Shown piece after piece: positions 1-64,000 of a stretch of 64,000 nucleotides of DNA. The translations under genes and the position numbers were made by a program. Every line of letters starts with the position of its first letter. The first letter of the stretch is position 1. The notes under the pieces were generated by a model that was not told the origin of the DNA, searched no databases, and worked only from the letters and a program-made list of their open reading frames with translations. The stretch lies in the sequence record OU509535.1; one strand, written 5' to 3'.

Positions 1-103
1 TAAAAGAAAAAATATCGTACTACATTATTTCCTTTGGTGTATTGAAATTTATTTGTACAAATTCATTTAGTATACAATACTTCGGCGACTGGTGTCAATT
101 ATT

Positions 104-403
104 ATGACTAAAGAAGAATATATGAAAGTTTTGTTCATTAAAGAAATTTTTGTCCAAATGGTATTGGGTACTGATTATTTGTACAAAAATGCATTCATTA
201 ACATTCTTGAAGTACTACAAGATGATTTTGATTCAAAGTATAATGGAATGAAGATAAATTACAAAACATATAATCAGGATTATATTAAAATTATCAAAAA
301 ATATACAATTAATTTAAGTTCTGTAAATTTTGAAACTGCACTTGGTATGAAGTTTAAACATTTTGATTATTATTTAATTCCAATTGGATTTAAAGATGAA
401 TAA
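104..403 (+). CDS. Hypothetical protein, paralog family A (~100 aa)
   Basis: ORF track 92..403; ATG104 follows GGTG; LQDDFDSKYNG motif. Confidence 0.7.
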   Translation: MTKEEYMKVLFIKEIFVQMVLGTDYLYKNAFINILEVLQDDFDSKYNGMKINYKTYNQDYIKIIKKYTINLSSVNFETALGMKFKHFDYYLIPIGFKDE

Positions 404-701
404 ATTCGAATACCAATCAATACAATTAATTAAAGAGTATTCAAATTCTTTACATAGTTCTTTTATTTTAAAAAATAATAATTATTCCACTAAAATTTGT
501 GATATAATTAATAATTATTTTAAATGTATATCTAAAGAATTTTCTACAAAATATAAGAATAAAAATATAAAAACCGATGTAGATGTTTTTGTAATAGTGG
601 GTTTCATTATACAACAAGATTTATGTGTTGTAAAATCACTAGCGAATAGTACTAATTATTTCTTTAATTGTAAATCCCTTATAGAAGGTGAACTTTTGTG
701 A
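396..701 (+). CDS. Hypothetical protein, family A
   Basis: ATG396 overlaps upstream stop; ISKEFSTKYKNK motif. Confidence 0.75.
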   Translation: MNKFEYQSIQLIKEYSNSLHSSFILKNNNYSTKICDIINNYFKCISKEFSTKYKNKNIKTDVDVFVIVGFIIQQDLCVVKSLANSTNYFFNCKSLIEGELL

Positions 702-1030
702 ATAAACCAAACATTTATCTGGAATTTGATAACAGCATAAAGCAAGTTAATATGTTGAGATCAATTTTGAGAGATTGTTATATAGAAGCATATTACTACA
801 AGAACTGGAATACTAAAATGTATTCTAATACATTATATTACTCATTCAATGAATATTTAGATTACATTTCCGAAGAATTCAATGAAAAATATAATTCAAT
901 TGTACTTACCTATAATTCAAAAAAGCATGTACTGAATAATATAGAAATGAGTTTGAAATTTATCACATTACATTTATCCAGTTCAGAATTACCAACGACA
1001 ATTATTATACATCCTTCATATCTGGAATAA
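698..1030 (+). CDS. Hypothetical protein, family A
   Basis: GTGA overlap; YLDYISEEFNEKYNS motif. Confidence 0.75.
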   Translation: MNKPNIYLEFDNSIKQVNMLRSILRDCYIEAYYYKNWNTKMYSNTLYYSFNEYLDYISEEFNEKYNSIVLTYNSKKHVLNNIEMSLKFITLHLSSSELPTTIIIHPSYLE

Positions 1031-1036
1031 AATATA

Positions 1037-1240
1037 ATGAATGATTTGGATTCCATGTTGTGGTATACTTTATCCGTTCTTTCATTTGAACGCGATAAAC
1101 ACAAAGTACAAGCATCAAAAAATCCAGATATATTACAGAAAAAGAAAGAATACGCATTAGTGTATTCTTTGGAAAAAACATTTATTTCTATGCATCTGGA
1201 ATACAGAGAATACATAACATCAAATGGTATTAAAAAATGA
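1037..1240 (+). CDS. Hypothetical protein
   Basis: 67 aa, tiles with neighbours. Confidence 0.65.
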   Translation: MNDLDSMLWYTLSVLSFERDKHKVQASKNPDILQKKKEYALVYSLEKTFISMHLEYREYITSNGIKK

Positions 1241-1572
1241 AATATAAATCCATAGTACACAAAAGATTTAAGTCAATATATTACACGGAAATTAATGTTC
1301 ATAAAAAAGTAAAAGGTATTGATTTTTATATTGATAAAGTATATCTGGATTATGATGTAGTTACTAATACATTCGAATGCACAGATCTCTTTGATTCAAT
1401 ACCAGTACCTAACTTGGCTGAATTAAGTGAAGAAGAAGAATTTCAGTACTCACTAGTATATGAAGATATATGGGGATTTAAATGGGATTATTATCGAATG
1501 GTGTCTTATCAAAAAGCACTAATATCCTCTATAAAAAAACAAAATTACTTATTAATTAATCTGGAATATTAA
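1237..1572 (+). CDS. FQYST-family protein (short member)
   Basis: SEEEEFQYSLVY motif; ATGA overlap. Confidence 0.75.
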   Translation: MKYKSIVHKRFKSIYYTEINVHKKVKGIDFYIDKVYLDYDVVTNTFECTDLFDSIPVPNLAELSEEEEFQYSLVYEDIWGFKWDYYRMVSYQKALISSIKKQNYLLINLEY

Positions 1573-1573
1573 T

Positions 1574-2107
1574 ATGCAAAACAAGTACAATTATAATGAC
1601 CCCGAATTTGCTACACTCGCATATGATATAGCAAAAATGGTAAAAGATTTAAAGGAATGTGCTATTGGTACAAAGGATATCAGTACTGTGATGAATACCG
1701 ATGTAAATTTTAAGAAAGAATTACAGGTAACTGATTCGACAAATCCTTTGGCTGCATTCAAGAATTGTGTGGTAAATTACTATGGTGTAGTACAATGTAA
1801 CATCGGATATAAATCCCACGAATGTAATATAGTAACTTTTGATGCATATGGAAATCTCCATGAAATTGATATTTATAAGGGTCAAAAATTAATCATTAAA
1901 TTCATGGATAGATACCTATTTACCAAATCATATCATTTCGAATTACCAAAAATTGATGGTGCATTCATTGATAATTATGATGCTTATATTTTTCAGTTAA
2001 GCACTACAAATGAATATTACAGTATCATTGATTTTGTACTTAGAATGAAAATGAAATTCCAGAGTAATTTGTACTTAAAAGGAAGTATCCTTGATCTGGT
2101 GTTATAA
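1574..2107 (+). CDS. FQYST-family protein
   Basis: YDAYIFQLSTT motif near C-terminus. Confidence 0.7.
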   Translation: MQNKYNYNDPEFATLAYDIAKMVKDLKECAIGTKDISTVMNTDVNFKKELQVTDSTNPLAAFKNCVVNYYGVVQCNIGYKSHECNIVTFDAYGNLHEIDIYKGQKLIIKFMDRYLFTKSYHFELPKIDGAFIDNYDAYIFQLSTTNEYYSIIDFVLRMKMKFQSNLYLKGSILDLVL

Positions 2108-2112
2108 AATAT

Positions 2113-2298
2113 ATGAAAATTTTAACAAAAGAAGAAGTACAAAAACGATTAATTGTACAACAAGATTATACAACAATGCATAGATTTCTTGAGCTTCGTT
2201 TATTGAATTTTATTGGTACAGATTATCAGAATTATTGTGTAGATTTTTATATCAAAATGCTTGAATCCGAAATTAAACTAAAATTAAAATTAAAATGA
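2113..2298 (+). CDS. Small protein, paralog family B (GT-N/D-x-Q)
   Basis: ELRLLNFIGTDYQ. Confidence 0.75.
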   Translation: MKILTKEEVQKRLIVQQDYTTMHRFLELRLLNFIGTDYQNYCVDFYIKMLESEIKLKLKLK

Positions 2299-2471
2299 AA
2301 CACATTAATAGTATTCAGTACCTTAAATTGTACAAAAAAGCACTTGATAATTCCAGTACAATGTTGGAGTTTAATGAAAACTTTTTCATATACGTATTGG
2401 GAACTAACTATCAAGAAAAGTTAATGCTTCCATATTTGGAAACTCTCTGCTATTCAATGAAGAAAAAATGA
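2295..2471 (+). CDS. Small protein, family B (58 aa, not in ORF track)
   Basis: Hand translation MKHINSIQYL...YVLGTNYQEKLMLPYLETL...KKK*; ATGA overlaps at both ends. Confidence 0.75.
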   Translation: MKHINSIQYLKLYKKALDNSSTMLEFNENFFIYVLGTNYQEKLMLPYLETLCYSMKKK

Positions 2472-2659
2472 AAATGTTAACTCCAACTGAATATGACAAT
2501 GTAATAAGTTTAGTATATGTTTCTTTACCACGAAAATGTAATTCTATCAGAAAATTTGAATTATATTTAAAAGCGGTTCTTGACACCAATTATCAGGCAC
2601 AAATTGCAAATATATACATTTCCAGACTTATTCTACATATGCAAGGAAAAATTATATGA
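2468..2659 (+). CDS. Small protein, family B
   Basis: ELYLKAVLDTNYQ. Confidence 0.75.
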   Translation: MKMLTPTEYDNVISLVYVSLPRKCNSIRKFELYLKAVLDTNYQAQIANIYISRLILHMQGKII

Positions 2660-2673
2660 TTTATTTGAATCTG

Positions 2674-2696
2674 AACCCTCTTAATTGAGGGTTTTT
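2674..2696 (+). terminator. Intrinsic terminator
   Basis: AACCCTC-ttaatt-GAGGGTT then T tract. Confidence 0.75.
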
Positions 2697-2700
2697 GTGA

Positions 2701-2729
2701 TTGACTTTCTCTATAATTTAATGTACAAT
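2701..2729 (+). promoter_or_regulatory. sigma70-type promoter
   Basis: TTGACT-17 nt-TACAAT. Confidence 0.7.
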
Positions 2730-2764
2730 AACAATAAATGTTAATAACATAGGGGTATTATGTT

Positions 2765-3088
2765 TTGAAAATCACACTAGGCGAAGATAAGTATATCAAA
2801 TTTTTAATCAATTTATATCAATCATTTAATTCAATACCAGGAGATACTGAATATGATAGGAATATAAAATTGATTTCTATAATTATGTTAGATACCATAT
2901 GTGAACCACATATTGAGTATTTGAACAAAAAATACAAAAACAAAAGAGTAACAGACAGATTTAATCATCCATATTATATTGGATATTTCAAAAGCACCCC
3001 ACTGGCCTTCTTTGCTTATACATTTACTGTTAATTTTCATATGTTCAGTCTTAAAGATTTGTATTTAACTGAGGAGACTTTCGCGTGA
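2765..3088 (+). CDS. Hypothetical protein, family A
   Basis: TTG start after AGGGG; HIEYLNKKYKNK. Confidence 0.7.
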   Translation: MKITLGEDKYIKFLINLYQSFNSIPGDTEYDRNIKLISIIMLDTICEPHIEYLNKKYKNKRVTDRFNHPYYIGYFKSTPLAFFAYTFTVNFHMFSLKDLYLTEETFA

Positions 3089-3378
3089 GTATGTATGAAC
3101 GAATAGATAAAACAGTACTAAAAACTTTACAAATGATTTATCGATTGACTAATTCAAGACACAAATACACTGAAATATTCACTTATACATTTATTGAATA
3201 TCTTAATTCCAGATACGAATATTGTACTATAAATGATGATACATTCAGGGTGGTGGAATTTAAGATTGGGCTATTTGGTATTTTATGTGTGATTAATTGT
3301 GAAAGAACCGGTAGAAATGAATACATTTATACACATGATTTAGGTGATGTAGATTTTGTTGTACAAAAAACATCATAG
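3085..3378 (+). CDS. Hypothetical protein, family A
   Basis: GTGA overlap; FIEYLNSRYEY. Confidence 0.75.
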   Translation: MSMYERIDKTVLKTLQMIYRLTNSRHKYTEIFTYTFIEYLNSRYEYCTINDDTFRVVEFKIGLFGILCVINCERTGRNEYIYTHDLGDVDFVVQKTS

Positions 3379-3388
3379 AGATAATATA

Positions 3389-3706
3389 ATGAAACTATCA
3401 GAAGACAAATATTATTGTACTTTAGATTTAATTACTGAATTATTTCTTGATAATAAAATACGAAAAACATATGCTTCTTATACATTGAGTAAATTGCGAG
3501 GCATTCATTATGAAGAATATATTCAGTACTTATCTATGAAATACAAAAATTCAGTATGTGATGTTTATTCTCATGGAGAAAGTGTCATTCTTGAATTTTC
3601 ATATGATCAATTTGGTATTTTAATTTATTGTACTAACAATTCATACGGGTTTTGTACTAGATTGGATTTTGTGGAAATATCTTCTTATGAAAAAACTGAA
3701 AAATAG
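3389..3706 (+). CDS. Hypothetical protein, family A
   Basis: Start moved to ATG3389; YIQYLSMKYKNS. Confidence 0.75.
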   Translation: MKLSEDKYYCTLDLITELFLDNKIRKTYASYTLSKLRGIHYEEYIQYLSMKYKNSVCDVYSHGESVILEFSYDQFGILIYCTNNSYGFCTRLDFVEISSYEKTEK

Positions 3707-4013
3707 TATAGTACACAAAACAATAAAAATGATTAATACTTCTATCATTTATACAGATTTTGTATATTGCTCACAAACATATAAAAATTTATTTGATTTA
3801 CTAATGGAACCGTATATTGAATATTTGAGAGAAAAATATATCAACAAACAAGGTTCAAGTTCTTACGGTGTTTCTATGAATTATTTTATAAACATAGTTG
3901 AAATAAATTCAGATCACGACTGGTTAGTTATTATTAAAGGTCAAAATAGCACTTTATGTTCCCAAAATTATGTATATTTCTCAATTGATGATTTTATTAT
4001 AAAAGATGAATAA
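3687..4013 (+). CDS. Hypothetical protein, family A
   Basis: YIEYLREKYINK. Confidence 0.75.
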   Translation: MKKLKNSIVHKTIKMINTSIIYTDFVYCSQTYKNLFDLLMEPYIEYLREKYINKQGSSSYGVSMNYFINIVEINSDHDWLVIIKGQNSTLCSQNYVYFSIDDFIIKDE

Positions 4014-4302: not shown

Positions 4303-4508
4303 AAAAGATATCAGATTTGGTATATTATGAAATTTTTTATAAGTACTTTGACAGATTCACTAATACTATTCTGGATAAACCGTACAGAAAATATGAAATT
4401 GAATTATTGGCGTTTATAGGAACAGATCAACAACAACAATGCCAAGATGATTATATACTATCATTGATTCGATACATGAGATTTTACCAAAATGATGAAG
4501 AATATTAA
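4299..4508 (+). CDS. Small protein, family B
   Basis: EIELLAFIGTDQQ. Confidence 0.75.
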   Translation: MKKISDLVYYEIFYKYFDRFTNTILDKPYRKYEIELLAFIGTDQQQQCQDDYILSLIRYMRFYQNDEEY

Positions 4509-5495: not shown

Positions 5496-5891
5496 ATGTC
5501 ATTTATGAAAGATAAAGAATATGCTGACATAATAATTAAAATTATAAAACATTTAAAACAACAAAATTCTGATCTAGGAACTTCAAATTTTAATGAATAT
5601 GCCAGCTTTGGATATTTGTGTTATAATTATAATGAACCAACATTGACTTATTTTTATGATAAAAAAGACAAAGATTTCGACAAGTTTTCAACTAAACTGG
5701 AAGTACTTTCATTTGATATCAATACAGAAGAAGGTTATTTTCAGGCATCTTTGATGTATCCAGATTCACAAATGCGAGTAATGTTTTTATTTGCAGAATT
5801 GAAAAAGAATTTTAAAAATGATTCATTTGTTATTCCCATGAAGTTACTAAATGATTATTTAATATATAAAGGTTATAACTGTTATGTCTGA
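5496..5891 (+). CDS. FQYST-family protein
   Basis: TEEGYFQASLMY. Confidence 0.8.
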   Translation: MSFMKDKEYADIIIKIIKHLKQQNSDLGTSNFNEYASFGYLCYNYNEPTLTYFYDKKDKDFDKFSTKLEVLSFDINTEEGYFQASLMYPDSQMRVMFLFAELKKNFKNDSFVIPMKLLNDYLIYKGYNCYV

Positions 5892-6273
5892 ATTTGAAAA
5901 AATTATTAAACGTTGTGAAATATATTTTTCTCATATTATAAAGAATATAGGAAAAACAAAAAAATCTACAGTTATAAATTGTGAATACAAAGATAATGGA
6001 TTTATTTGTTATACACCAGAAAATAATGAATGTTATTTTTATTTCCCAGATCCAGAATTTGGTTCTTCTGGTATAAAAACAGAAATACCAGATGATGTTC
6101 TAACTGAAGAAGGTTATTTTCAGTACTCAACTATTTTTGATGATGAAAAATTATTCAGTATGGTGTTAATGAAATATTTTAAAGATAATTGTGATTTTGG
6201 ATTTTCTGTAGAGGCTCCTGATTGTCTTTTTGACTTCCTACAACGAACCGTATACAATGAAAATACTAACTGA
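5884..6273 (+). CDS. FQYST-family protein
   Basis: TEEGYFQYSTIF. Confidence 0.8.
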   Translation: MSEFEKIIKRCEIYFSHIIKNIGKTKKSTVINCEYKDNGFICYTPENNECYFYFPDPEFGSSGIKTEIPDDVLTEEGYFQYSTIFDDEKLFSMVLMKYFKDNCDFGFSVEAPDCLFDFLQRTVYNENTN

Positions 6274-6451
6274 GAGTGATTGCTACAGAATATGTTCTGA
6301 AGTATCTTTAAACTCAATCAATAAAAATAAAGTACAACGTGCAGAACTAATATTAGTAAGATTTATGGGTACAAACTTTGAAGGAATTGCTTTGTATAAT
6401 TATATGAATTGTTTAATGGAATATTGTAATGAGTTACATAACAGAAAGTAG
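6257..6451 (+). CDS. Small protein, family B
   Basis: MKILT start like 2113; ELILVRFMGTNFE. Confidence 0.7.
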   Translation: MKILTESDCYRICSEVSLNSINKNKVQRAELILVRFMGTNFEGIALYNYMNCLMEYCNELHNRK

Positions 6452-6851
6452 TTACGAAAGAGATATTTTTATGTGTTCAGAAATAATGAGAATTCATGAA
6501 CGATTTATTGGTCTTGATTCTTTGGTGTGGAGTTTTAGAGAGGATGCATATTTAATTTTCAGTCCAGGAACTAAAAATTATATACAATACCATCTTTCAT
6601 CACAAGAACAAAACGAGTTATTTTTTAAAGGATCTACTGTACTGAGTTCAATCGATCTTGATTATCCTCTTAAAGAAGACATTGATTTGTGTACAGAAGA
6701 AGGTTATTTTCAGGGTTCATTAATTCTTGACAAAAAATATTTAACAGTATATACTATTTTTCAGTTCCTTGATAAAAATTGTAATTCTGCGTTCTCTATT
6801 GATATGGTACCTTTTTTGAAGGGGTTTAGACGAAAATATGAAAATAGTTGA
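6429..6851 (+). CDS. FQYST-family protein
   Basis: TEEGYFQGSLIL. Confidence 0.8.
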   Translation: MSYITESSYERDIFMCSEIMRIHERFIGLDSLVWSFREDAYLIFSPGTKNYIQYHLSSQEQNELFFKGSTVLSSIDLDYPLKEDIDLCTEEGYFQGSLILDKKYLTVYTIFQFLDKNCNSAFSIDMVPFLKGFRRKYENS

Positions 6852-7233
6852 TTATGATTACCAAAGGGATCTAGCTATATCTAATATCATTTTGGAACTC
6901 TGTGAAGATGATCCTTATTATACTGTAGTTCGAGGATATAGTAATAATGAATACAAAAGTGATGGGTTTTTGGTTTATTCCAATGGAACACCCGTAAATG
7001 AAATTCTTGTATTTCCAAGGTTCAATGAAGTACTACAAAAGAACATGGTACCAAATAAACTTGTTAAATTAGTCCAAACTGATTTGTTGTCCGAAGAATC
7101 ATATTTTCAACATAGTACTTTATATGATGCATTCGAATTGCATGTTATGTTTATTTTTCAATACTTAATGAAATATAGTACACATTCAGTATCAATGCCA
7201 ATGAGATCAATCTGGAATGAATATGAAAAATAG
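6838..7233 (+). CDS. FQYST-family protein
   Basis: SEESYFQHSTLY. Confidence 0.8.
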   Translation: MKIVDYDYQRDLAISNIILELCEDDPYYTVVRGYSNNEYKSDGFLVYSNGTPVNEILVFPRFNEVLQKNMVPNKLVKLVQTDLLSEESYFQHSTLYDAFELHVMFIFQYLMKYSTHSVSMPMRSIWNEYEK

Positions 7234-7750
7234 TTATATCTATGATGAAAAAGAAAACAAAGGTGAATTAATTCAACACATGACTATACAAGAATGTTTT
7301 GAATACGCTGATAAAGTAATTGATTTATATAATATCTTACATAATAAACCAAAAATCAAAATACTCAATTTAGCTGAACTATCGTCGGATAAATCTTTTG
7401 AATACACAAGCAATGATAATTTAAATGATTTAGTTTATTCAGAAGATAATCATTATTTTATAGGTACTTCATTTATTGAGATTTATTCAGGAATACGATA
7501 TATTCCAGAGAGTGTTCATAAAATATTAGGTATAACATCAGGTGGTGGAACATCCAACCTCATTGATATCGGTGATGTTATCATTGAAAACACGGAAGAG
7601 GATATCTTTCAGTACAGTACTGTTTATAGTGAACACGAATTAAAGCATTTGATTATTTTAAGTGCAATTAAAAAGAATAAGTGTAGAGAGTTCTTTATGG
7701 ATTTGAATTATTTGGAATTTTTATTAGATTATCATTATAACTTAAATTAA
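7217..7750 (+). CDS. FQYST-family protein
   Basis: TEEDIFQYSTVY. Confidence 0.8.
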   Translation: MNMKNSYIYDEKENKGELIQHMTIQECFEYADKVIDLYNILHNKPKIKILNLAELSSDKSFEYTSNDNLNDLVYSEDNHYFIGTSFIEIYSGIRYIPESVHKILGITSGGGTSNLIDIGDVIIENTEEDIFQYSTVYSEHELKHLIILSAIKKNKCREFFMDLNYLEFLLDYHYNLN

Positions 7751-7759
7751 AAAAATATT

Positions 7760-8281
7760 ATGAAATCAATTTATACTGAAAGTATTAAAATCATTAATGA
7801 CATTAATGATTTCTTTAAATATGTAAATTCAAATTCTTATTATGCACTTCATAATTTGAATATACTAATTTTTGATCATCCAGGTTCTGTTATTTCTGCA
7901 TTTGAACCTAAAAATTTTTATCAAATCTGTTTAATTAGAGATAATGTCCAGGAATCAATTTTTAAGGTATCATTGAATACGAGATATGAATACTGGAACG
8001 AATCAAAAATGTTCTATTTTGACGCGAGCAGAAATGAATTTTCAATATGTGAAAAAACAAAAATCCAAAATACTGTTGATATTTTGGAATATGATAACAA
8101 TATAGAAGAGTTAGCATTCCAGTACAGTACTGAAGTACAACTGGAATTTGTTCCTGTTTGTGTATTGGCTTCGTACTTAAAGAAGAATCACGACCCGAAA
8201 TACCCATTATTTAAACTGATACTCAACGATGTTGATTTTTTATTAAAACGATTCAAGGAAATAGAAGATTATGATTGGTAA
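7760..8281 (+). CDS. FQYST-family protein
   Basis: IEELAFQYSTEV. Confidence 0.8.
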   Translation: MKSIYTESIKIINDINDFFKYVNSNSYYALHNLNILIFDHPGSVISAFEPKNFYQICLIRDNVQESIFKVSLNTRYEYWNESKMFYFDASRNEFSICEKTKIQNTVDILEYDNNIEELAFQYSTEVQLEFVPVCVLASYLKKNHDPKYPLFKLILNDVDFLLKRFKEIEDYDW

Positions 8282-8762
8282 TTTAATCGATTTTAATTCG
8301 GTATTAAAATTCTCAGAGAATTTAATTAAAATTCACAAAGCATTTACTGATGATTTCTTTTTGAAAGTACCGAACTTTTGTACTAAACGAGAAGAAGCAC
8401 CTGGTGAGTATGAATATTCAGTTAATCAACCAATAAAATGTTCACAAATGTATACAAGTTTAACTGAAGAATATATTATTGATATTAATGATATATATTT
8501 TATATCTTTTATTCCCGATTCGATGCTTGAAATATATATTAATGTTATTAAATCAAAAGAACTTAGCACAAAAGATGTGAATTCATTTGATATATCAGAA
8601 GAGGCGTATTTCCAGGGAAGCACGATTTATGAACCAGTAATGTTAAATTCTATTTTAGTGGCATCTGTACTAAATCGAAGTGATTGTGATAAATTTTATT
8701 TTGATTTAGATTATTATGATCTTTGTGTTGAGTATATGGAAAAATATAATTATGTTCGATAA
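8271..8762 (+). CDS. FQYST-family protein
   Basis: SEEAYFQGSTIY. Confidence 0.8.
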   Translation: MIGNLIDFNSVLKFSENLIKIHKAFTDDFFLKVPNFCTKREEAPGEYEYSVNQPIKCSQMYTSLTEEYIIDINDIYFISFIPDSMLEIYINVIKSKELSTKDVNSFDISEEAYFQGSTIYEPVMLNSILVASVLNRSDCDKFYFDLDYYDLCVEYMEKYNYVR

Positions 8763-9246
8763 ATGCATTAGGACTGCACAAGAAATTATTCAAATAATAG
8801 TAGCAATAGAATCTACTGATGTAAAGTATGATGATTTCAAAAGTAATTTTACAGAAAAATATGTACAGGACTCAGATTTTATTCAGTACTATATTAAAGG
8901 TGAAGAATCTGTAATATTCTATGCAAATGAAACATATATTTGTGATTATGACAATTCTTCTAGATTTAATTACATCTGTTTTATTCCAAAATCAAATATT
9001 ATAGTATTTCGCCTTTCTGATGAATTCGAAACAATATATGAATATGAACTATTTAAAGATTTTTCAGAAGAACTGGCATTTCAGTACAGTACATTGTACA
9101 ATTATGATATAATTGAAATGATGATTATGTTCTGGTATTTTAACCAGATCTACAATGGCTCTTTTTATATTAATATGAATTTATTTGAAAAAGCCAAAAA
9201 AATATATGAGAGATATCATGACTTCGAATACAAATCCATTAATTGA
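8752..9246 (+). CDS. FQYST-family protein
   Basis: Start moved to ATG8752; SEELAFQYSTLY. Confidence 0.8.
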   Translation: MFDKCIRTAQEIIQIIVAIESTDVKYDDFKSNFTEKYVQDSDFIQYYIKGEESVIFYANETYICDYDNSSRFNYICFIPKSNIIVFRLSDEFETIYEYELFKDFSEELAFQYSTLYNYDIIEMMIMFWYFNQIYNGSFYINMNLFEKAKKIYERYHDFEYKSIN

Positions 9247-9808
9247 ACACGATAGTCAATTTTTTTACGAAAAAATAACTAATAGTATAGAATTATTAAA
9301 AAATATAGTCACTTATTTAAACCAAAATGATATGGAATATGTTGCTCATAAAACTGGCGATTTGTATTTTTATATTACAAATGAAAACCCTCGTATTATG
9401 TCATTCCACACTGGTGAATATTCTTTTATGGATTTTTATACTAGTACAGAAAAGAAAGATGGTAGAAATTCAGTAGACATATTCAATAATAAAAAGAAAA
9501 CGTGTATAGATTTTAATATACTACAAAATACTGATTCTTTTTTTCTCTCAGATTCCAGAAATGGTGCAGCGAATGTAATTGATGCGTCAAAAATAATCGA
9601 ATTGCCTATAATTAAAGTTCAAACAGAAGAAGAAAGATTTCAGTACAGTACTGTGTATAATGATATTGAATTGCGTAGTATTGAATTGTATTATAAATTT
9701 ATGAAAGAACAATTGTATTTTTACGTTACATTAGATGGTGTTGAAGAAATTCAAACTGTACTTCAAACAATACATAATGATTTACCAAAATATATAAGGA
9801 AAAAATAA
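9218..9808 (+). CDS. FQYST-family protein
   Basis: Start uncertain (9185/9218); TEEERFQYSTVY. Confidence 0.8.
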   Translation: MTSNTNPLIEHDSQFFYEKITNSIELLKNIVTYLNQNDMEYVAHKTGDLYFYITNENPRIMSFHTGEYSFMDFYTSTEKKDGRNSVDIFNNKKKTCIDFNILQNTDSFFLSDSRNGAANVIDASKIIELPIIKVQTEEERFQYSTVYNDIELRSIELYYKFMKEQLYFYVTLDGVEEIQTVLQTIHNDLPKYIRKK

Positions 9809-10305
9809 TGAATAGTGAATATAAAAAATCTAAACACATCACGGATTCGTTGGTAAAATTAATCAAATCAATACTGAATGGTGCAATCGATGGACGACTA
9901 ATCTATGATGACAGTGATGACACCATTAATGTTACATTAAAATCCAACAAAAAAAGTTATAGAAATCTATTTACTACTGGGTGGTATTATAGTGAGTACT
10001 TACTTGAAGACAACTCTTCATTGGGATATTCAGAAACTAATTATTTTGCTTTTGACCCAAATGATAGTTCTCTTGTTGTGACTATTCGACAATGTAATGG
10101 TAAAAGAACAAGAGAGAAAATTAATACATCTGGACTTAATATAGATACAGAAGAAGGGTGGTTCCAGTACAGTACTTTATATAATGATACTGAACTATTT
10201 TCTATTATGTTATGGTGTGCATTTAAGAAAGAAAACTTCCCATCATGTTTAGTGGAATTTTCAGAATTTTTCAAATATTTGGAAGAAACAAATGATATTA
10301 TCTGA
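9808..10305 (+). CDS. FQYST-family protein
   Basis: TEEGWFQYSTLY. Confidence 0.8.
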   Translation: MNSEYKKSKHITDSLVKLIKSILNGAIDGRLIYDDSDDTINVTLKSNKKSYRNLFTTGWYYSEYLLEDNSSLGYSETNYFAFDPNDSSLVVTIRQCNGKRTREKINTSGLNIDTEEGWFQYSTLYNDTELFSIMLWCAFKKENFPSCLVEFSEFFKYLEETNDII

Positions 10306-24430: not shown

Positions 24431-24949
24431 ATGGAAAAGAATAAAAATAAACACGCGGTGCATTTCAGTACAAGAAAAAATGATCTATGGACAACACCAA
24501 AACCATTGTTTGATAAACTAAATGCTTTGTGGAATTTTACAGTAGATGTTGCTTGCAGTCATGAAACAGCTTTGTGTCTTAAACACTACACACCAGAAGA
24601 TGATGGTTTATCACAGGACTGGAGTAACGAAACATTTTGGTTAAATCCACCTTATAGTGATTTATCTCCTTGGTTATCAAAAAGCGTTGAAGACTATAAC
24701 AGAGGTGCTACTGGTTTGATTTTGGTTCCAGCAAGAACTGATACCAGAGCTTTTCAGAATTTTGCTTCTCCTTTTTGTGATGCTATGTGTTTTATAAAAG
24801 GAAGGCTTAAATTTGGTAATCCACTAAAACCGAATGATAAACTATCATCAGCACCATTCCCTTCTTGCATTATAGTACTGGATAAGAATCTAACACAAGC
24901 GAAAATAGATTGCCTAAAATCTTTAGGAAACACTATGGTTAACATATGA
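24431..24949 (+). CDS. dam: DNA N6-adenine methyltransferase (phage Dam family)
   Basis: WTTPKPLF..L, DVACS, EDDGLSQDW, WLNPPYS catalytic motif, LVPARTDT, FIKGRLKF. Confidence 0.9.
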   Translation: MEKNKNKHAVHFSTRKNDLWTTPKPLFDKLNALWNFTVDVACSHETALCLKHYTPEDDGLSQDWSNETFWLNPPYSDLSPWLSKSVEDYNRGATGLILVPARTDTRAFQNFASPFCDAMCFIKGRLKFGNPLKPNDKLSSAPFPSCIIVLDKNLTQAKIDCLKSLGNTMVNI

Positions 24950-29741: not shown

Positions 29742-29774
29742 GTCCAGTACAATATAAGTACTGGACATTTTTTT
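29742..29774 (+). terminator. Intrinsic terminator
   Basis: GTCCAGTAC-aatataa-GTACTGGAC then T tract. Confidence 0.75.
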
Positions 29775-30688: not shown

Positions 30689-30953
30689 ACATTTTAATAG
30701 AATACAATTAATTACCCAACTTCTACAAATGGTTGATGACACATTTGATGAATTAAAAAATAATCTTATGAATAAGAAAATCAAATGTAAGGTATATATG
30801 AATGATGGTGATTATTTCGATATGCGTGAAGTTGAAGTAACTGGAATTGTTACTAATATTACTTTGTATGAATATGATCTAACTATTACAGTGAAAATCG
30901 ACGAAGGTCGTGAATATTACGTTTGTAATCAACATATTGAGGTGGTTGAATGA
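30681..30953 (+). CDS. Hypothetical protein, family A-like
   Basis: DELKNNLMNKKIKC. Confidence 0.7.
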   Translation: MNEHFNRIQLITQLLQMVDDTFDELKNNLMNKKIKCKVYMNDGDYFDMREVEVTGIVTNITLYEYDLTITVKIDEGREYYVCNQHIEVVE

Positions 30954-32095
30954 GTTTAGTAGAAATCTATAATGATTTAATGAATTTAGTACAAAATAAT
31001 GAAGCATTTGAATATAAAGATCAGCGTTCAATTGGTGGTGGTTTGTATAGAATCTTTTCTTATCGAATGGCCTCATATACTGATTTCTGTGAACCTAATG
31101 CCAAAGAAACACGAGGTTCAATGTGGGAAATCAATGAAGATGGTACTATGATTCGTTGTGCAGCACGTACTATGAATAAATTTTTTAACGCATATGAAAA
31201 CCCATTCACAATGTTTGATAAAAATATGCTTAGTACTGAAATTGAAGTGGCGATGGATAAACGAGACGGTTCTATTATCAGTACTTTCAGAGATAATGAC
31301 GGAATTATTCGTTGTAAATCTCACACTTCTCTATCTTCAGAACACGCAATTAATAGTAATGCTATCATGCGTCCTGGTTCTAGTTTATATCAATACGTAG
31401 AAGAAGCTGAACTTCAACAATATACCGTGAACCTCGAATATACTTCACCTGAATATCGTATTGTATTGCCATACCAGAGCGAGAAACTGACTGTATTGAA
31501 CGTTCGTCATCGAATCACTGGTGAACTACTGTGTGGTGAAAAACTGCGTCAGAAGTTTCCTATGCTCTCTATGCGTAGCACTAATATGATAAATGGTCAG
31601 AACATTGCCAGTAATTTTCCAATGCGTACTACAGTACTTGAAACTGTGGAAGCAGTAAAAGGAATGCGAGACATTGAAGGATTTGTGGCAGTACTGAAAG
31701 ATGGCACAATGTTTAAAATTAAAACAGATTGGTACTGTGCTTTGCATTTTAATAAGGATAGTATTAATGTTGATTCTAGACTTTATGAATCAGTGCTACA
31801 AGGTGCAAGTGATGATTTAAGACAAATGTTCTCTAATGATCAGTATTGTCTTGATAAGATTAAAAGGATGGAAGATTTAGTATTCAGTACTTATAATTCT
31901 TTTGAAAAATTTGTTAATGATTTTTACAATGAATTTAAACATTTAGAACGCAAAGAATATGCACTAAAAGTACAGAAACTTCTACCAAAAGAATTAAATC
32001 ATCAGGGTTATGCTTTCTCTTTGTATAACAATAAACCGTTTGATTTAAAGGAAAACATGATCAAATACAGCAAAGAAGTATTAAAAGATTTCTAA
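30950..32095 (+). CDS. rnlA: RNA ligase 1 (T4 Rnl1-like)
   Basis: MNKFFN, motif I KRDGS, NLEY, EGFV, FKIKTDWY. Confidence 0.9.
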   Translation: MSLVEIYNDLMNLVQNNEAFEYKDQRSIGGGLYRIFSYRMASYTDFCEPNAKETRGSMWEINEDGTMIRCAARTMNKFFNAYENPFTMFDKNMLSTEIEVAMDKRDGSIISTFRDNDGIIRCKSHTSLSSEHAINSNAIMRPGSSLYQYVEEAELQQYTVNLEYTSPEYRIVLPYQSEKLTVLNVRHRITGELLCGEKLRQKFPMLSMRSTNMINGQNIASNFPMRTTVLETVEAVKGMRDIEGFVAVLKDGTMFKIKTDWYCALHFNKDSINVDSRLYESVLQGASDDLRQMFSNDQYCLDKIKRMEDLVFSTYNSFEKFVNDFYNEFKHLERKEYALKVQKLLPKELNHQGYAFSLYNNKPFDLKENMIKYSKEVLKDF

Positions 32096-33282: not shown

Positions 33283-34227
33283 ATGCCAACAATCACATTA
33301 ACAGTTGGACTTCCCGGATGTGGCAAGACTACATGGGCTGTTGAAGAAGTTCGAAGATCTAAAAGTAAAACAGTAAACATCAACCGTGATGATATGCGAG
33401 AAAGCATGGCTGGTTCTCATGAGAATTATAAGTTCAAAGATGATAATGAGAAGTACATAGACGCTATGCAAATTGCAGCAGCAGATACAGCAGCAAAGAA
33501 TAAGTGGAATATTATTATTTCAGATACCAACCTAAAGTTATCTATCCGAAAGAAATGGAAAGATTGGGCTAAAGCCAATGGCTATGATTACAAAGAAAAG
33601 AATTTCTTTGATGACTTTGTAGCAAAAAGTACTTCAGGTGCAGATGTTCATCAGTACTTTAAAATTAAAGAATTTGTAAAACAATGCAAAGACTATAATT
33701 TACTTCGCTACAAATCAGTACCTGAATCAGTAATTGATAATATGGCCGATTCTTATTTGTATAGCACTATGCCCATTCCTTCAGTACAGAAAGATTCGAT
33801 GTATGATTTTAATACTGAATATATCATTGTTGATATTGATGGTACTTTAGCACATAGGGGAAATCGCAACCCATATGATGAAAGTACTGTACTGGAAGAT
33901 ACACCAGATCTTGAAGTTATTCGTTCAGTACTGGCTGAAGTGAACCATCATAAACGAAAGGTTATTATCATGAGTGGTCGTCATGAAACTTGTGCAAAAG
34001 ACACTCGTTTGTGGCTCCATGAAAATGGAGTTCCATTTGAATATCTTTTCATGCGTTCAGAAAATGACAATCGTCCAGATGATGTGGTAAAGTACGAATT
34101 GTACATGAAACATGTTGCCCCATATTATAATGTTGTTAAAGTTTATGATGACCGACAACAAGTGTGTACGATGTGGCGTAAATTACTGAAATTGAAAGTT
34201 TTTCAAGTTGATGTTGGAAATTTTTGA
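33283..34227 (+). CDS. pseT: Polynucleotide 5'-kinase/3'-phosphatase
   Basis: P-loop GLPGCGKTT, NRDD, HAD motif DIDGT, SGR, DDR..VCTMWR. Confidence 0.95.
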   Translation: MPTITLTVGLPGCGKTTWAVEEVRRSKSKTVNINRDDMRESMAGSHENYKFKDDNEKYIDAMQIAAADTAAKNKWNIIISDTNLKLSIRKKWKDWAKANGYDYKEKNFFDDFVAKSTSGADVHQYFKIKEFVKQCKDYNLLRYKSVPESVIDNMADSYLYSTMPIPSVQKDSMYDFNTEYIIVDIDGTLAHRGNRNPYDESTVLEDTPDLEVIRSVLAEVNHHKRKVIIMSGRHETCAKDTRLWLHENGVPFEYLFMRSENDNRPDDVVKYELYMKHVAPYYNVVKVYDDRQQVCTMWRKLLKLKVFQVDVGNF

Positions 34228-55561: not shown

Positions 55562-55597
55562 AAAAATGGTAGTACTGGTTAAAGTACTACCATTTTT
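55562..55597 (+). terminator. Intrinsic terminator built on two AGTACT sites
   Basis: AAAAATGGTAGTACT-ggttaa-AGTACTACCATTTTT, 15-bp stem. Confidence 0.85.
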
Positions 55598-60188: not shown

Positions 60189-60562
60189 TGCGTAAAATTG
60201 ATTATGTAGCATTTTTATTAAAGGATGGTACAGTAATTGAAAAGCATATTATTCGTATGCCAGCGTATAATGAGAAGGGATGGTATAATAGTGTAGTTAG
60301 TATTGATGCATTCAACAATCGTGAGTCCGAACGATTTTATCAAATTAGATGTGTTAAAAAGAAACCACTTCTTGGTTTATTGTGTCATTTATATCGATTA
60401 ACTGAATGGGAACGTGATACACAGTTATCAACTAATCGTATGAAAAAATATGATCCTTCATATGAACATCCTTACAATTTAGTACCATGCATTGAGCATC
60501 AAAATGTGTTTGACTTTTATAAACACATCGGGTATGATTATAAAAAGAAGCGATACATTTAA
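60188..60562 (+). CDS. Hypothetical protein
   Basis: TAATG overlap, 124 aa. Confidence 0.75.
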   Translation: MRKIDYVAFLLKDGTVIEKHIIRMPAYNEKGWYNSVVSIDAFNNRESERFYQIRCVKKKPLLGLLCHLYRLTEWERDTQLSTNRMKKYDPSYEHPYNLVPCIEHQNVFDFYKHIGYDYKKKRYI

Positions 60563-60573
60563 AGGTAAATTTA

Positions 60574-61773
60574 ATGAAACTTTGTAAGCATTGCCAGAAA
60601 CCAAAATTCAAACATCAACGTGAAACACTGAATTGTCCAAGTCCAACTCGTTCATTGGCTGCGAATTTTAATAGTACAACTGTATATGATGAATATGAAT
60701 CCGATCCAGTACATTATGCTATTGCACAAGTACAATTGAAAGCTGATATTGCTGAAATTACTGCTGGTCTTGATGAACTTCTTGCTAAAGGTGATATTAA
60801 CGAACAGTCGTATAAAATGAATTTAGCAAATGCAACTGCTAATCTTACTCGTATTGCTGAAAATAGTAAACGCGAAGAATTTGAACCTAATGCAGTACTG
60901 TATGTTTCTTTTAACGATGTGGTGTATTTTTATGATGCACAATGGGAAGGAAATGCAGTACTAGAAGGTGAAAAAGCAGTAGAAGATTTATATTTTTCTG
61001 ATAAATTCAAAGAATATTATGATGCTGGTATTGTACCAGTATTAGAAGTGTTGGATAATGAAAGTACTGAAATGATTAAAGTAATTTATAATGCAGAACG
61101 TGCTGAATTTATTTCTGATATTAGTCGTGATAAACATTTGAAAGAAAAAGATACAAAACAAGAAGAAGTATCTTTATCTGATTTGAATAATGATGATTTT
61201 GTACTTCCATTGCATGATAAACAATGGGTACTAAATACTATTCGAAAAAATTCTGACGATGATTGTGATGTTGAAGAACTTGAATGTGCATTGAAAAGCT
61301 GTGATGGATCTATTGTTCTTGGTAAACCAGATACAGAAAACGATGGAACTTATCTAATGCTTGGTATGAAAACCAACGATGGTTTCCTTGAAAATGATTA
61401 CTGTCTTCTTGATAACATTTTGCTTAAAGATTGGAGTGTACTTGAAAATTCAGGGTTGATTGAAATTGGTACTTTTGAAAGCCACATTGACATTGATGAA
61501 AGCAAAAATAAAGGTATTACTACTTTTATGTCTGAAGTAATTGCACGTTCATTATTCAGTACTGAAGCATTGGATATGAAAAGTACGGGTGATTGTAAAG
61601 CATTCTTGAAATCAGAATACAATGTACAAAAAGCAAAACGCATCAAGAAAGAAAAATGGGGTAAAATTGAGTACCGAATCTTTGAAGATGATAATGGTGA
61701 ACAGTATACTATTGTCACTTACTGTGATAAGTTGATTTCACATTATCCATTTGCTTACAATGAGGATTATTAA
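60574..61773 (+). CDS. Acidic hypothetical protein with N-terminal CxxC...H...C
   Basis: 399 aa intact ORF. Confidence 0.8.
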   Translation: MKLCKHCQKPKFKHQRETLNCPSPTRSLAANFNSTTVYDEYESDPVHYAIAQVQLKADIAEITAGLDELLAKGDINEQSYKMNLANATANLTRIAENSKREEFEPNAVLYVSFNDVVYFYDAQWEGNAVLEGEKAVEDLYFSDKFKEYYDAGIVPVLEVLDNESTEMIKVIYNAERAEFISDISRDKHLKEKDTKQEEVSLSDLNNDDFVLPLHDKQWVLNTIRKNSDDDCDVEELECALKSCDGSIVLGKPDTENDGTYLMLGMKTNDGFLENDYCLLDNILLKDWSVLENSGLIEIGTFESHIDIDESKNKGITTFMSEVIARSLFSTEALDMKSTGDCKAFLKSEYNVQKAKRIKKEKWGKIEYRIFEDDNGEQYTIVTYCDKLISHYPFAYNEDY

Positions 61774-61991
61774 TGATCATCTATGCTGTTCAGGAAATTG
61801 ATTTTTATACTGAAGAATACGACAATCAAAAAATTCGTAAATTATTTTTAAATTTAGACGCTGCACTTAATTATGTAAAAACTACATATGATATTAAAAT
61901 TACTAACGTTAATACATGTAAAACATATATCGAAAATGATGAAGAACGTGGAGAAGTTTCCGTTGGTATTTATGAAATGAGTGTGTTATAA
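61773..61991 (+). CDS. Hypothetical protein
   Basis: TAATG overlap, 72 aa. Confidence 0.7.
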   Translation: MIIYAVQEIDFYTEEYDNQKIRKLFLNLDAALNYVKTTYDIKITNVNTCKTYIENDEERGEVSVGIYEMSVL

Positions 61992-61992
61992 T
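61984..61992 (+). promoter_or_regulatory. Extended -10 promoter
   Basis: TG-t-TATAAT. Confidence 0.5.
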
Positions 61993-62013
61993 TAAATAGT
62001 TTTTAACAAACAA

Positions 62014-62132
62014 GAAAGTACTGTCACCGTGCATCTGGGTAAAATCAGTATAAGTCCGTAAAGCACAATGCCAATACTCAACAATCTCCCTACTCCTTGA
62101 GATCTACCAAAGTTGAGGGTGGTAGTACTTTC
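62014..62132 (+). ncRNA. Candidate ~120-nt structured RNA
   Basis: 15-bp closing stem with two G-U pairs plus internal stems (see findings). Confidence 0.55.
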
Positions 62133-62142
62133 ACCTTTTTAG

Positions 62143-62394
62143 ATGAGAAACATTATGATTTTATTAATTATTACTACAGTACTGTTAGGATTATTCAATT
62201 GCTGGATTTATTCAAGAATTGAAAAGAAAGAAGGATATTGCTTTCATAGTACAAAAGATGGTCAATTGGTTTCAATGTTTAGTTTAGAAACCCCATCAAT
62301 TTGTAAATTCTTTATTCTTTTACAATTCATCCCGTTTGTTAATATTGTTTTCGCACTTTTATATTTCGTAGATATTCTTAATGGACATTTATAA
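62143..62394 (+). CDS. Small membrane protein
   Basis: Two hydrophobic segments. Confidence 0.65.
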   Translation: MRNIMILLIITTVLLGLFNCWIYSRIEKKEGYCFHSTKDGQLVSMFSLETPSICKFFILLQFIPFVNIVFALLYFVDILNGHL

Positions 62395-63050
62395 TGAATA
62401 TTAAAACAACCGCAGATAAGTACTGGTTCATTATGAACCACCCAAAGTTTTTAAATAAAAATTTCATCACACCAAAAATTGAAATTGAACCACATAACGT
62501 ATGTCCACAAACCAACAGAATTGAACCGTATGAATATTTGAATACAAAAGTCCAGTACTGGATTGAATTTTTTATCCCAGTACATGAGGATGGAAAGTGG
62601 GATATTGCACATGATTACAAACATGATTGTGGTGGTGATACAATAGATGAAGCAATTGACTGCTTATACAATTCAGTACTAAATGAATATGGAAATTATA
62701 CACAAGAAGAATTAGACAAAAAAGAAGATGAAGTATATGATTACAAAAAATTCAAGGTTGGTGGTGCAACAATGTCATATATTTTATCTAAAATTCATGA
62801 AGACCTGTTTGAATACGCAAATGATAAAATTGTAACAGATGAAGAAGCAGAACCCTATAATAACAACACAGTTGGTTATTATGAAAACAAAATTAAAGAA
62901 TTAAAAGGAACTTTAAATTCATTAATCGAATTCAAAAGAAATTCACCAAAAGAAATGCACAAAGTAATTGACAAAGACATAAAAAACGTAGAACATGACA
63001 TTTTTGCGAATGAAATGAGTATTAAATTTATGGTGGATTTGGATCTATGA
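62394..63050 (+). CDS. Hypothetical protein
   Basis: TAATG overlap, 218 aa. Confidence 0.75.
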   Translation: MNIKTTADKYWFIMNHPKFLNKNFITPKIEIEPHNVCPQTNRIEPYEYLNTKVQYWIEFFIPVHEDGKWDIAHDYKHDCGGDTIDEAIDCLYNSVLNEYGNYTQEELDKKEDEVYDYKKFKVGGATMSYILSKIHEDLFEYANDKIVTDEEAEPYNNNTVGYYENKIKELKGTLNSLIEFKRNSPKEMHKVIDKDIKNVEHDIFANEMSIKFMVDLDL

Positions 63051-63415
63051 ATAAAGATCTTTCAAAATTAGTTGAAGACCTGCGGCAGTTGCCGAAAGTT
63101 GAACAAGTTGGGTCGTTTAAACGTTTTTTGGTTATTGCACGTGCATTAGATAAAAAGGGACGTGTACTTAGTACCAAAACTAATTCATACACACAAACAC
63201 ATCCAGTACAGAAGAAGTTTGCAGTTAAGGCTGGACGGTGTGAAGCTGTATGGCTCCATGCAGAAATTCGTTGTTTGTTAGCTGCAAGAAAAGATGTTCA
63301 TACATTACTAATTGCCAGAATTAACAAAGAAGGTCTTCCTGTTCCCGCAAAGCCATGTTCTGTTTGTGAACTGGCTATAAAAGAATATGGTGTAAAAAGG
63401 GTGATTTATACATGA
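63047..63415 (+). CDS. Cytidine/dCMP-deaminase-fold protein
   Basis: HAEIRCL and PCSVC Zn motifs. Confidence 0.8.
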   Translation: MNKDLSKLVEDLRQLPKVEQVGSFKRFLVIARALDKKGRVLSTKTNSYTQTHPVQKKFAVKAGRCEAVWLHAEIRCLLAARKDVHTLLIARINKEGLPVPAKPCSVCELAIKEYGVKRVIYT

Positions 63416-63585
63416 AAAATATTTTTAAAAAAGAATATGATGGTGAAAGCCTTTGTGATATTCAACGAGATGTTGTTGAAGCATTCAGTACAGTATTCAA
63501 TCCAGAAATGATTGATATTCCAGTCGATGAATATGGATTCCAAGAAGGTACATTTGTTGTAAGTATTAAATGGAAGCCAGAATAA
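63412..63585 (+). CDS. Small phage protein (57 aa, not in ORF track)
   Basis: ATGA overlap; MKNIFKKEYDGESLCDIQRD...GFQEGTFVVSIKWKPE*. Confidence 0.7.
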   Translation: MKNIFKKEYDGESLCDIQRDVVEAFSTVFNPEMIDIPVDEYGFQEGTFVVSIKWKPE

Positions 63586-63713
63586 TGCGTGATCTTATTA
63601 TGTTCTTTTCTGCAATCATAGGACTATGTACTTATTATTTTTCCAATCATTATATTATAGCTATGGTATTTGCAATTATATATATTGCACTTTACAGTAC
63701 TGACGACGAATAA
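63585..63713 (+). CDS. Small two-TM protein (42 aa, not in ORF track)
   Basis: TAATG overlap; hydrophobic; ends at terminator. Confidence 0.55.
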   Translation: MRDLIMFFSAIIGLCTYYFSNHYIIAMVFAIIYIALYSTDDE

Positions 63714-63735
63714 AAGCACCCCAGTGGTGCTTTTT
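63712..63735 (+). terminator. Intrinsic terminator
   Basis: AAAAGCACC-ccagt-GGTGCTTTT. Confidence 0.8.
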
Positions 63736-63770
63736 GTATTTGTACAAAATATAATCTAAGTGACTTTTTA

Positions 63771-63812
63771 TTGATTTAAATCAAGAATAAAATCACCTTT
63801 TAGTGATATAAT
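63771..63812 (+). promoter_or_regulatory. FNR-box (class II) promoter of nrdD
   Basis: TTGAT-ttaa-ATCAA at 63771-63784; TG-a-TATAAT at 63804-63812; box centre at -41.5. Confidence 0.75.
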
Positions 63813-63867
63813 ATGTTACGTAGCATTTAAATAAATCTACCACATAATAAAAAATCAAGGAAGAAAA

Positions 63868-64000
63868 ATGAATTCAAATAAATTATATGAAGATATTGAA
63901 AATTTTATTAATAATACAAATAAAGATATTACTACTGAAAATGCTAATAAAGATGCCAAAGTAGTTAATACACATAGAGATTTATTTGCTGGTATCCTTT
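63868..64000 (+). CDS. nrdD: Anaerobic ribonucleoside-triphosphate reductase, N-terminus (truncated by window end)
   Basis: AAGGA SD; MNSNKLYEDIENFINNTNKDITTENANKDAKVVNTHRDLFAGIL matches T4-type NrdD start (NKD...ENANKD...RDL.AGI). Confidence 0.85.
   Translation, partial: MNSNKLYEDIENFINNTNKDITTENANKDAKVVNTHRDLFAGIL

Follow-up and report, generated by a model that had tools for sequence, protein, structure and literature searches.

The palindromic hexamer AGTACT is strongly over-represented in a 64,000-nucleotide stretch of jumbo-phage DNA from sequence record OU509535.1 (hereafter the window), where 166 copies are dispersed between positions 211 and 63701, or ~1 per 385 bp. The enrichment is imposed on the DNA itself, is graded and symmetric, recurs through a clade of jumbo phages, occupies fixed positions in early promoters and is absent from newly acquired genes. 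It was tentatively concluded, with rather less than even confidence, that AGTACT is the site of a symmetric (dimeric), clade-specific DNA-binding factor, for which it would act as a double operator at early promoters while weak selection kept it dense across the genome. As far as the searchable literature shows, enrichment of AGTACT has not been reported before; no report was found there, and the genome papers on phages CBB and RaK2 are silent on it.

AGTACT enrichment and its distribution

Megablast matched the window at 100% identity to OU509535.1, which is a circular assembly of 347.5 kb bearing the label "Klebsiella pneumoniae phage"; position 1 of the window corresponds to record position 62001. 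The window also shows 97-99% identity to the Klebsiella phages RCIP0023, K64-1, Muenster and RaK2 (genus Alcyoneusvirus), with Escherichia phage 121Q as a distant relative in the same search. The G+C content is 29.5%, ~118 open reading frames (ORFs) lie nearly all on the + strand, and no tRNA genes were found in the 64 kb. The remainder of the record was read in pieces, two of which (L001 and L002, both outside the window) are referred to below. The annotation of RCIP0023 was too sparse to be of help and was dropped, as was PhoH as a probe for relatives, being too widespread.

Expected counts were calculated from base composition and from order-1 and order-2 Markov models, which predict 21.0, 12.9 and 30.9 copies of AGTACT, respectively, against the 166 observed. 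Three codon-aware nulls were also used, in which synonymous codons were shuffled per gene (62.6 +/- 5.5 expected, z 19), third positions were shuffled with all dinucleotides preserved (121.5 +/- 5.6, z 8) or whole codons were shuffled (36.6, z 30). Under all three of these, as under the Markov models, CAGTAC and AGTACT ranked 1 and 2 among the 4096 hexamers, and AGTACT was the sole strongly over-represented 6-bp palindrome in the window. In a codon-pair-preserving expectation the in-frame class is fixed by construction and only the out-of-frame classes are informative; these two classes together number 73 against 43.6 expected. The most over-represented codon pair is AGT-ACT itself (76 versus 10.9 expected), followed by CAG-TAC and GTA-CTG, which are the same word in the other frames. 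The enrichment is thus real and strong.

The original prediction, which was made from the letters of the window alone and described AGTACT as strongly over-represented throughout, survives both codon-pair preservation and comparison with the other hexamers. Its hand count of ~40 copies in the first ~20 kb compares with an exact 39, and the near-cognates that it called common, AGTACA, AGTACC and GGTACT, occur 85, 30 and 31 times. Density is sustained to the end of the window, at 8-17 copies per 5 kb, and the spacing is slightly more even than random (coefficient of variation of the gaps, 0.80). As it had also stated, every frame and intergenic DNA contain sites: 149 copies lie within ORFs, with the frames AGT-ACT, xAG-TAC-T and xxA-GTA-CTx represented 75, 18 and 52 times, and 17 are non-coding, between ORFs.

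Outside the early region described below, AGTACT density is 2.26 per kb in coding and 2.31 per kb in non-coding DNA, is flat along genes and is equal for genes of both strands. Codon choice depends on context: serine AGT stands at 78% ahead of ACT versus 30% elsewhere, tyrosine TAC at 64% following ..AG versus 22%, valine GTA at 86% inside A-GTA-CT versus 44% and glutamine CAG at 62% ahead of TAC versus 22%. Because coding and non-coding densities are equal, codon choice is context-dependent and all frames are in use, the force behind the enrichment acts on DNA and not via codons or proteins, as the selection "at the DNA level" of the original prediction implied. AGTACT has left its mark on protein sequences: over all window genes the Ser-Thr dipeptide occurs 161 times versus 74 expected, and Thr-Ser only 56 times. 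An artefact of codon usage, amino-acid content or paralogous or repeated sequence is refuted already by the shuffles, the codon-pair expectation and the coding and non-coding densities, and its probability is practically nil. Protein sequence and codon usage alone do lift the expectation from about 13-31 to 63, yet all codon-aware nulls are exceeded (z 8 to 30), the sites share no extended common context and T4, with a similar G+C content, lacks the enrichment. A tandem array of ~180-aa ORFs at 7-20 kb was considered as a source; it consists of small paralogue clusters only and has no bearing on the motif count. At 5496-10305, six adjacent ORFs of 130-207 aa form a small paralogue family (~35% identity); in the rest of the run of similar-sized ORFs, up to 20 kb, no paralogy was detected.

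Over the whole 347-kb genome AGTACT occurs 945 times, versus 80 (order-1) or 179 (order-2) expected, and each 50-kb piece holds 97-261 copies versus 10-35 expected. The comparison with related jumbo phages that had been proposed as a check bears the prediction out. The hexamer ranking is headed by AGTACT in 121Q (149 in 50 kb versus 14 expected), in Cronobacter phage GAP32 (114 versus 13), in Xanthomonas phage XaC1 (150 in 41 kb versus 15) and in Salmonella phage SD-6_S16, as it is in three uncultivated jumbo-phage contigs. Counts are at the level of chance in T4 (5 versus 5.2) and in the Agrobacterium jumbo phage Atu_ph07 (2 versus 4.4), and a 50-kb sample of Escherichia coli K-12 contains 3 copies (~1 per 17 kb), ~40-fold sparser than the phage. 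AGTACT density is therefore a trait of a single phage clade (RaK2/121Q/GAP32/XaC1) across differing hosts. Because the trait follows the phage clade over Klebsiella, E. coli, Salmonella, Cronobacter and Xanthomonas hosts, a phage-encoded cause is argued for.

Within the genome, two regions depart from the prevailing density. At the low extreme are 10 kb with 1-4 AGTACT per 5 kb (L002:5000-15000, record 131-141 kb), which hold tail-fibre genes. These are ~82% identical to genes of unrelated 55-kb Klebsiella phages and therefore recently acquired, and their low density suggests that the motif is gained with time after acquisition. Motif density could act as a clock or marker of recently acquired DNA in RaK2-like phages. 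At the high extreme, record 30-50 kb carries 5-9 sites per kb among many tiny ORFs; in the annotation of phage Muenster, its counterpart belongs to the terminal repeat.

The enriched word, its place in early promoters and its turnover

Position-specific counts give the full word as (C/A)AGTACT(G/T). Among the AGTACT sites of the window, 35 are complete palindromic octamers CAGTACTG, between positions 1681 and 63702, versus 0.44 (order-1), 1.9 (order-2) or 4.6 +/- 1.9 (synonymous shuffle) expected. Genome-wide, GTAC with A to its left and T to its right stands at 11.9x observed over expected, GTAC with a single preferred flank at 2.8x and GTAC with no preferred flank at 1.17x, whereas CA-GTAC-TG reaches 80x. 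Bare GTAC, which the original prediction had named as the core, was accordingly ruled out as the enriched unit; the real word is wider. Variants of AGTACT that retain GTAC are enriched 2-3.8x, and half-sites are enriched alone, from 2.8x (A-GTAC) up to 7-8x (CA-GTAC), with equal counts on the two strands (CAGTAC 614, GTACTG 658). The full palindrome is ~2-fold commoner than independent halves predict. The tendency of left and right flanks to be complementary stops at +/-3, so that the footprint is symmetric and spans ~12 bp, and beyond +/-3 bp the information content around AGTACT sites is ~0. Because no sequence information extends past that limit, the sites are not copies of a longer repeat, and a longer repeat or mobile element was ruled out. 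Graded, symmetric recognition of this kind is typical of a dimeric binding protein.

Some 25 putative sigma70-like promoters on the + strand, among them one at L001:38419-38454, were found at L001:32-49 kb, outside the window, with the layout AAAAGTAC-TTGACA-N10-(T/C)CAGTACTG-TATAAT. Each has two AGTACT sites 20 bp apart, one fused to the -35 hexamer and the other abutting the -10 hexamer; AGTACT pairs at a distance of 20 bp occur 23 times genome-wide. The same layout is present in divergent contigs (L016, L019 and L030), in which AGTACT is invariant and the flanks and spacer vary. Judging by sequence, the palindrome has the fixed place, overlapping or abutting -35 and -10 in many promoters, that is expected of an operator, in all cases outside the window. 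RpoD-like early promoters in this group were noted in the CBB genome paper, but the AGTACT elements were not. Just downstream of several early promoters sit perfect 18-22-bp palindromes centred on GTAC, and at the edge of the early region (L001:30172-30258) at least six copies of TTCAGTACTA are repeated in tandem at intervals of exactly 10 bp. Arrays phased to the helix in this way are typically bound by protein, and this one might be an origin, packaging or regulatory site.

The motif had also been said to occur inside hairpin stems. This holds for two intrinsic-terminator-like hairpins on the + strand, each followed by a T-run: one at 29742-29766 (-14.8 kcal/mol, z -4.0), with 9-bp arms GTCCAGTAC and GTACTGGAC and GTAC in each arm, and one at 55562-55597 (-20.1 kcal/mol, z -4.1), with AGTACT in both arms (…ATGGTAGTACT and AGTACTACCAT…) at 55571 and 55583. 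It does not hold for the putative hairpin at 62014, which is not significant (z 0.26).

When aligned genes are compared with those of 121Q (61% nucleotide identity), 26% of AGTACT sites keep their position, whereas for hexamers as a whole the figure is ~10%. Losses and gains were then counted among the window genome, K64-1 and RaK2, which diverge by no more than 3%. AGTACT was lost 31 times, versus 31.4 for composition-matched hexamers, and was gained from one-mismatch neighbours 12 times versus 4.5 in the control (2.7x, p 0.002), with the highest gain rate per neighbour among 894 hexamers. No signal of density homeostasis (gains in large gaps, losses near existing sites) was seen with these 12 gains and 31 losses. 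Density is therefore kept by turnover and individual sites are not frozen; the force per site is weak, and the dynamics, in small numbers, slightly favour a gain-biased drive over simple uniform selection.

A proposed DNA-binding factor and the rival explanations

We infer a protein that reads AGTACT, its encoding by the phage and the purpose of coating the genome with it. The factor would be encoded by, and conserved in, the RaK2/121Q/GAP32/XaC1 clade. In the early promoters of the terminal-repeat region, two sites 20 bp, or two helical turns, apart have double-operator geometry and could, for example, allow early transcription to be shut off. Elsewhere in the genome, a weak, position-independent pressure on density would hold ~2.3-2.7 sites per kb. 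Since phage DNA is ~40 times denser in the word than host DNA, such a factor could selectively coat or mark the DNA of the phage. Among the alternatives originally listed, that of a site bound by a protein, nucleoid-type or other, gives the best fit to the evidence.

Several observations weigh against this explanation. No binding protein was identified, and a Pfam sweep of all 118 window ORFs gave no recognisable helix-turn-helix regulator. The one candidate coating protein found is the H-NS-like early protein at L001:35725-36222 (K64-1 gp430; 166 aa), which has the H-NS N-terminal oligomerisation domain (PF22470, 27.1 bits, cutoff 24.5) and is conserved in 121Q-like phages at ~34% identity, but it has no known tie to AGTACT and was detected by tblastn in Alcyoneusvirus and Asteriusvirus alone, with no match in GAP32 or XaC1. 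The promoter arrangement occurs only outside the window, which essentially shows the dispersed class alone: it has no such promoter on the + strand and one - strand pattern match, at ~3546. Simple uniform weak selection predicts fewer losses than the 31 seen (31.4 neutral), a detail that a mutational or conversion drive fits better. The explanation gives no reason why a regulator should need ~945 sites within genes, and a purpose as "self-mark" is pure inference.

In one alternative, a mutational or repair drive, phage replication, repair or gene conversion turns near-cognates into (C)AGTACT(G), which would build up everywhere the longer DNA has resided in the genome and without benefit, promoter and terminator use being secondary. 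Gains at 2.7x the control rate, at the top of 894 hexamers, with losses at the control rate, count in its favour; the equal coding and non-coding density, flat along genes, and the scarcity of the motif in recently acquired tail-fibre genes also agree with it. The counts are small, however, and short-term comparisons over-count mildly deleterious losses. The biased repair of the original prediction is kept alive by the excess of gains, yet the signature left by very-short-patch repair at CTAG and CCWGG was not seen: no one-mismatch neighbour is depleted, including the transition neighbours AATACT/AGTATT (1.40x order-1, 0.91x order-2) and AGCACT/AGTGCT (1.92x and 1.68x). Neither a Vsr-type nor another candidate enzyme was found, in a search that was not exhaustive. 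The invariance of AGTACT at two fixed early-promoter positions in divergent phages, while nearby bases vary, points to function, and the force is strong enough to double Ser-Thr dipeptide frequency. A drive of this kind was judged unlikely, and more so a second alternative. Here a replication or recombination enzyme would read the asymmetric half-site (C)AGTAC, on single strands or in one orientation, as a primase start signal or a Chi-like signal for a phage nuclease, and the palindrome would be simply the cheapest placement on both strands. The half-sites that are enriched alone (2.8x to 7-8x), their strand balance (614 versus 658), a uniform spacing of a few hundred base pairs with window gaps slightly more even than random, and the possession by the clade of a T4-type primase-helicase and recombination genes would all suit it. 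Known primases of the T4 type, though, read trinucleotides, and the ~2-fold excess of the palindrome over independent halves, the flank symmetry out to +/-3, and the paired palindromes at fixed promoter places and 10-bp-phased arrays, which resemble duplex-DNA operators, argue against it; the half-site explanation is improbable.

Methylation, which the original prediction had linked to the palindrome through a cognate methyltransferase, is about as improbable an explanation. A phage methyltransferase would here modify AGTACT or GTAC, with sites enriched as a methyl self-mark or via methylation-linked repair, as proposed for HIP1. The window does encode a small DNA N6-adenine methyltransferase at 24431-24949 (+ strand; 172 aa, NPPY motif; Pfam PF05869 Dam, E 1.5e-27; PHROG 111), the sole recognisable sequence-specific DNA enzyme in the window. 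It is the orthologue of RaK2 "dam" gp447/gp088, is kept in 121Q (gene 417) and has as its nearest relatives outside the jumbo-phage group the enzymes of Staphylococcus aureus phage P954 and of lactococcal 936-type phages, 44-45% identical. At 45% identity specificity can drift, but M.Phi93DAM, the closest characterised member of this small Dam family, has been shown experimentally to make G6mATC (PMC4190342), so that GATC, and not AGTACT, is the target predicted from the family. Two methyltransferases, gp194 and gp447, are named in the RaK2 paper, which reports that RaK2 DNA is cut only by enzymes tolerating Dam, Dcm, CpG and EcoKI methylation and that bisulfite sequencing detected methylated CpG (PMC3622015). 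The second enzyme, gp194, corresponds to L035:8708-9601, outside the window, and is a compact C5-cytosine methyltransferase of 297 aa whose best solved-structure matches are the catalytic domains of mammalian DNMT3A/B (E ~2e-22), far ahead of bacterial M.HhaI and M.HaeIII; a DNMT3-like enzyme would fit the CpG methylation reported. Motif screens of all genome ORFs, with Pfam and PHROG searches on the candidates, gave no further methyltransferase, although they also missed the gp194 orthologue and so are not exhaustive. The group thus has two enzymes, and for neither is AGTACT the predicted target. The site of a restriction-modification or orphan methyltransferase is all-or-none, whereas here bare GTAC is not enriched and the near-cognates are enriched in a graded manner (11.9x, 2.8x, 1.17x). 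The motif is enriched in SD-6_S16 despite a broken methyltransferase gene, although that break may be a sequencing artefact; ORFs are fragmented throughout the record, and it was dropped as a natural methyltransferase knock-out.

Far less likely than these is a host-factor site, through which the phage would mimic the binding site of the host nucleoid-occlusion protein SlmA to block or titrate cell-division control. SlmA occurs in enterobacteria, the group to which the Klebsiella, E. coli, Salmonella and Cronobacter hosts belong. The published site GTGAGTACTCAC has AGTACT as its central six bases, and SlmA requires G-T-purine ahead of AGT, mirrored on the opposite side (PMC3020112). These flanks are disfavoured in the phage, with G at -1 in 7% and C at +1 in 5% of sites, both under background; GAGTACTC is present in 7 of 945 sites and half-site matches in 23 of 945. 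The full consensus GTRAGYRCTYAC occurs twice in the 347-kb genome, which has 945 copies of AGTACT, and its sole match in the window, taken as a control, is GTGAGTACTTAC at 9992-10003. Enrichment persists in Xanthomonas phage XaC1 with other flanks (there the preference shifts to AAGTACTT, with A..T in place of the C..G of the enterobacterial phages), and the phage lacks a SlmA homologue. A SlmA site was ruled out on the wrong flanks and the missing homologue. A LexA box (TACTG/CAGTA halves) was dropped without a formal test: A is commoner than T after CTG, and no CTGT-N8-ACAG arrangement occurs in the promoter copies read.

If a clade-specific DNA-binding factor is the reader of AGTACT, it is possible, though doubtful, that RaK2-like phages mark their DNA as "self" through word density (~1 per 400 bp versus ~1 per 17 kb in the E. 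coli sample). Such a mark might serve early-promoter shut-off, genome coating or protection during attack on host DNA. RaK2-like phages have ordinary bases save for Dam-type and CpG-type methylation, and a self-mark of this kind would be a sequence-encoded counterpart to the base modifications of T4 or SPO1, a new route by which a virus with essentially unmodified bases could tell its own DNA from that of its host. A clade that reverses palindrome avoidance and reshapes its codons and dipeptides implies conserved machinery reading the word, and oligonucleotides of CAGTACTG offer a sequence handle with which to fish for the factor. AGTACT density is also a simple signature of RaK2-like phage DNA and of recently acquired genes in it, and the word provides a defined early-promoter element in phages now used against Klebsiella and E. 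coli.

Other features of the window and comparison with known systems

Other genes of the window include RNA-repair genes, placed by the RaK2 annotation, for a T4-type RNA ligase 1 (30950-32095) and a polynucleotide kinase-phosphatase (33283-34227). NAD-salvage genes, two ClpP-like proteases, Sir2, PhoH and a PIN domain are also encoded, and Pfam detected CapR-homology and cREC_REC domains.

Among other words, GCGC is missing from the window (0 copies versus 16 expected), as are many G+C-rich 6-bp palindromes, and CGTACG is missing from the whole genome (0 versus 12.9). CTAG (0.49x), GATC (0.63x) and ACTAGT (0.39x) are depleted, and CCAG and CTGG are enriched ~2.2-2.4x. These words show ordinary palindrome avoidance together with an E. 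coli-like CTAG/CCAGG pattern. The most depleted hexamers of the window are TAAATA (22 versus 64-82 under the codon-aware nulls) and TATTTA (31 versus 70-99), along with AAAAAA. The CBB paper proposed ATAAATA as the late promoter of the group, resembling the T4 late promoter TATAAATA, and the depletion of TAAATA and TATTTA looks like avoidance of spurious late promoters within genes. In 121Q at 190-240 kb (L006), TGCTGGTG occurs 10 times versus 1.0 expected and TGCTGG 28 times versus 5.9; both overlap the E. coli Chi sequence GCTGGTGG, which is present complete in 2 copies there and in none in the window.

Phage genomes are known for avoidance of short palindromes, in the form of restriction-site avoidance. 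The rest of the window conforms to this pattern, and AGTACT, at a 12-fold excess, does the opposite. The comparison with a highly iterated palindrome, made in the original prediction, is apt. Like HIP1 of cyanobacteria (GCGATCGC), AGTACT is a palindrome far above both Markov and codon-aware expectation, dispersed genome-wide in all frames and in non-coding DNA, with a density that is common to related genomes, across genera, while individual sites turn over. HIP1 is reported to co-occur with a methyltransferase whose site lies inside the palindrome; for AGTACT no matching methyltransferase is evident. The carrier also differs, being a clade of lytic jumbo phages and not a cell, as does the word, the AT-rich (C)AGTACT(G), and AGTACT has in addition its fixed place in early promoters.

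Chi, the neisserial DNA uptake sequence and the Haemophilus uptake signal sequence are likewise short words brought to high density by weak selection, with density conserved over individual sites, and they let a dedicated protein recognise "own" DNA. They are asymmetric and bacterial, with known readers (RecBCD, ComP), whereas AGTACT is palindromic and its genome viral. In function, the closest analogy to the proposed factor is TF1, a DNA-binding protein encoded by Bacillus phage SPO1. TF1 is abundant, has a preference for phage DNA, binds at early promoters and helps to shut off early transcription. It recognises phage DNA via the modified base hydroxymethyluracil, whereas for AGTACT the density of the word would provide the selectivity; no TF1/HU homologue was identified. 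The SlmA-binding site shares with AGTACT its central hexamer, a 12-bp symmetric footprint and a genome-dispersed role as a mark for a protein (PMC3020112), and it is set apart by required flanks that the phage disfavours, with 2 consensus matches per genome.

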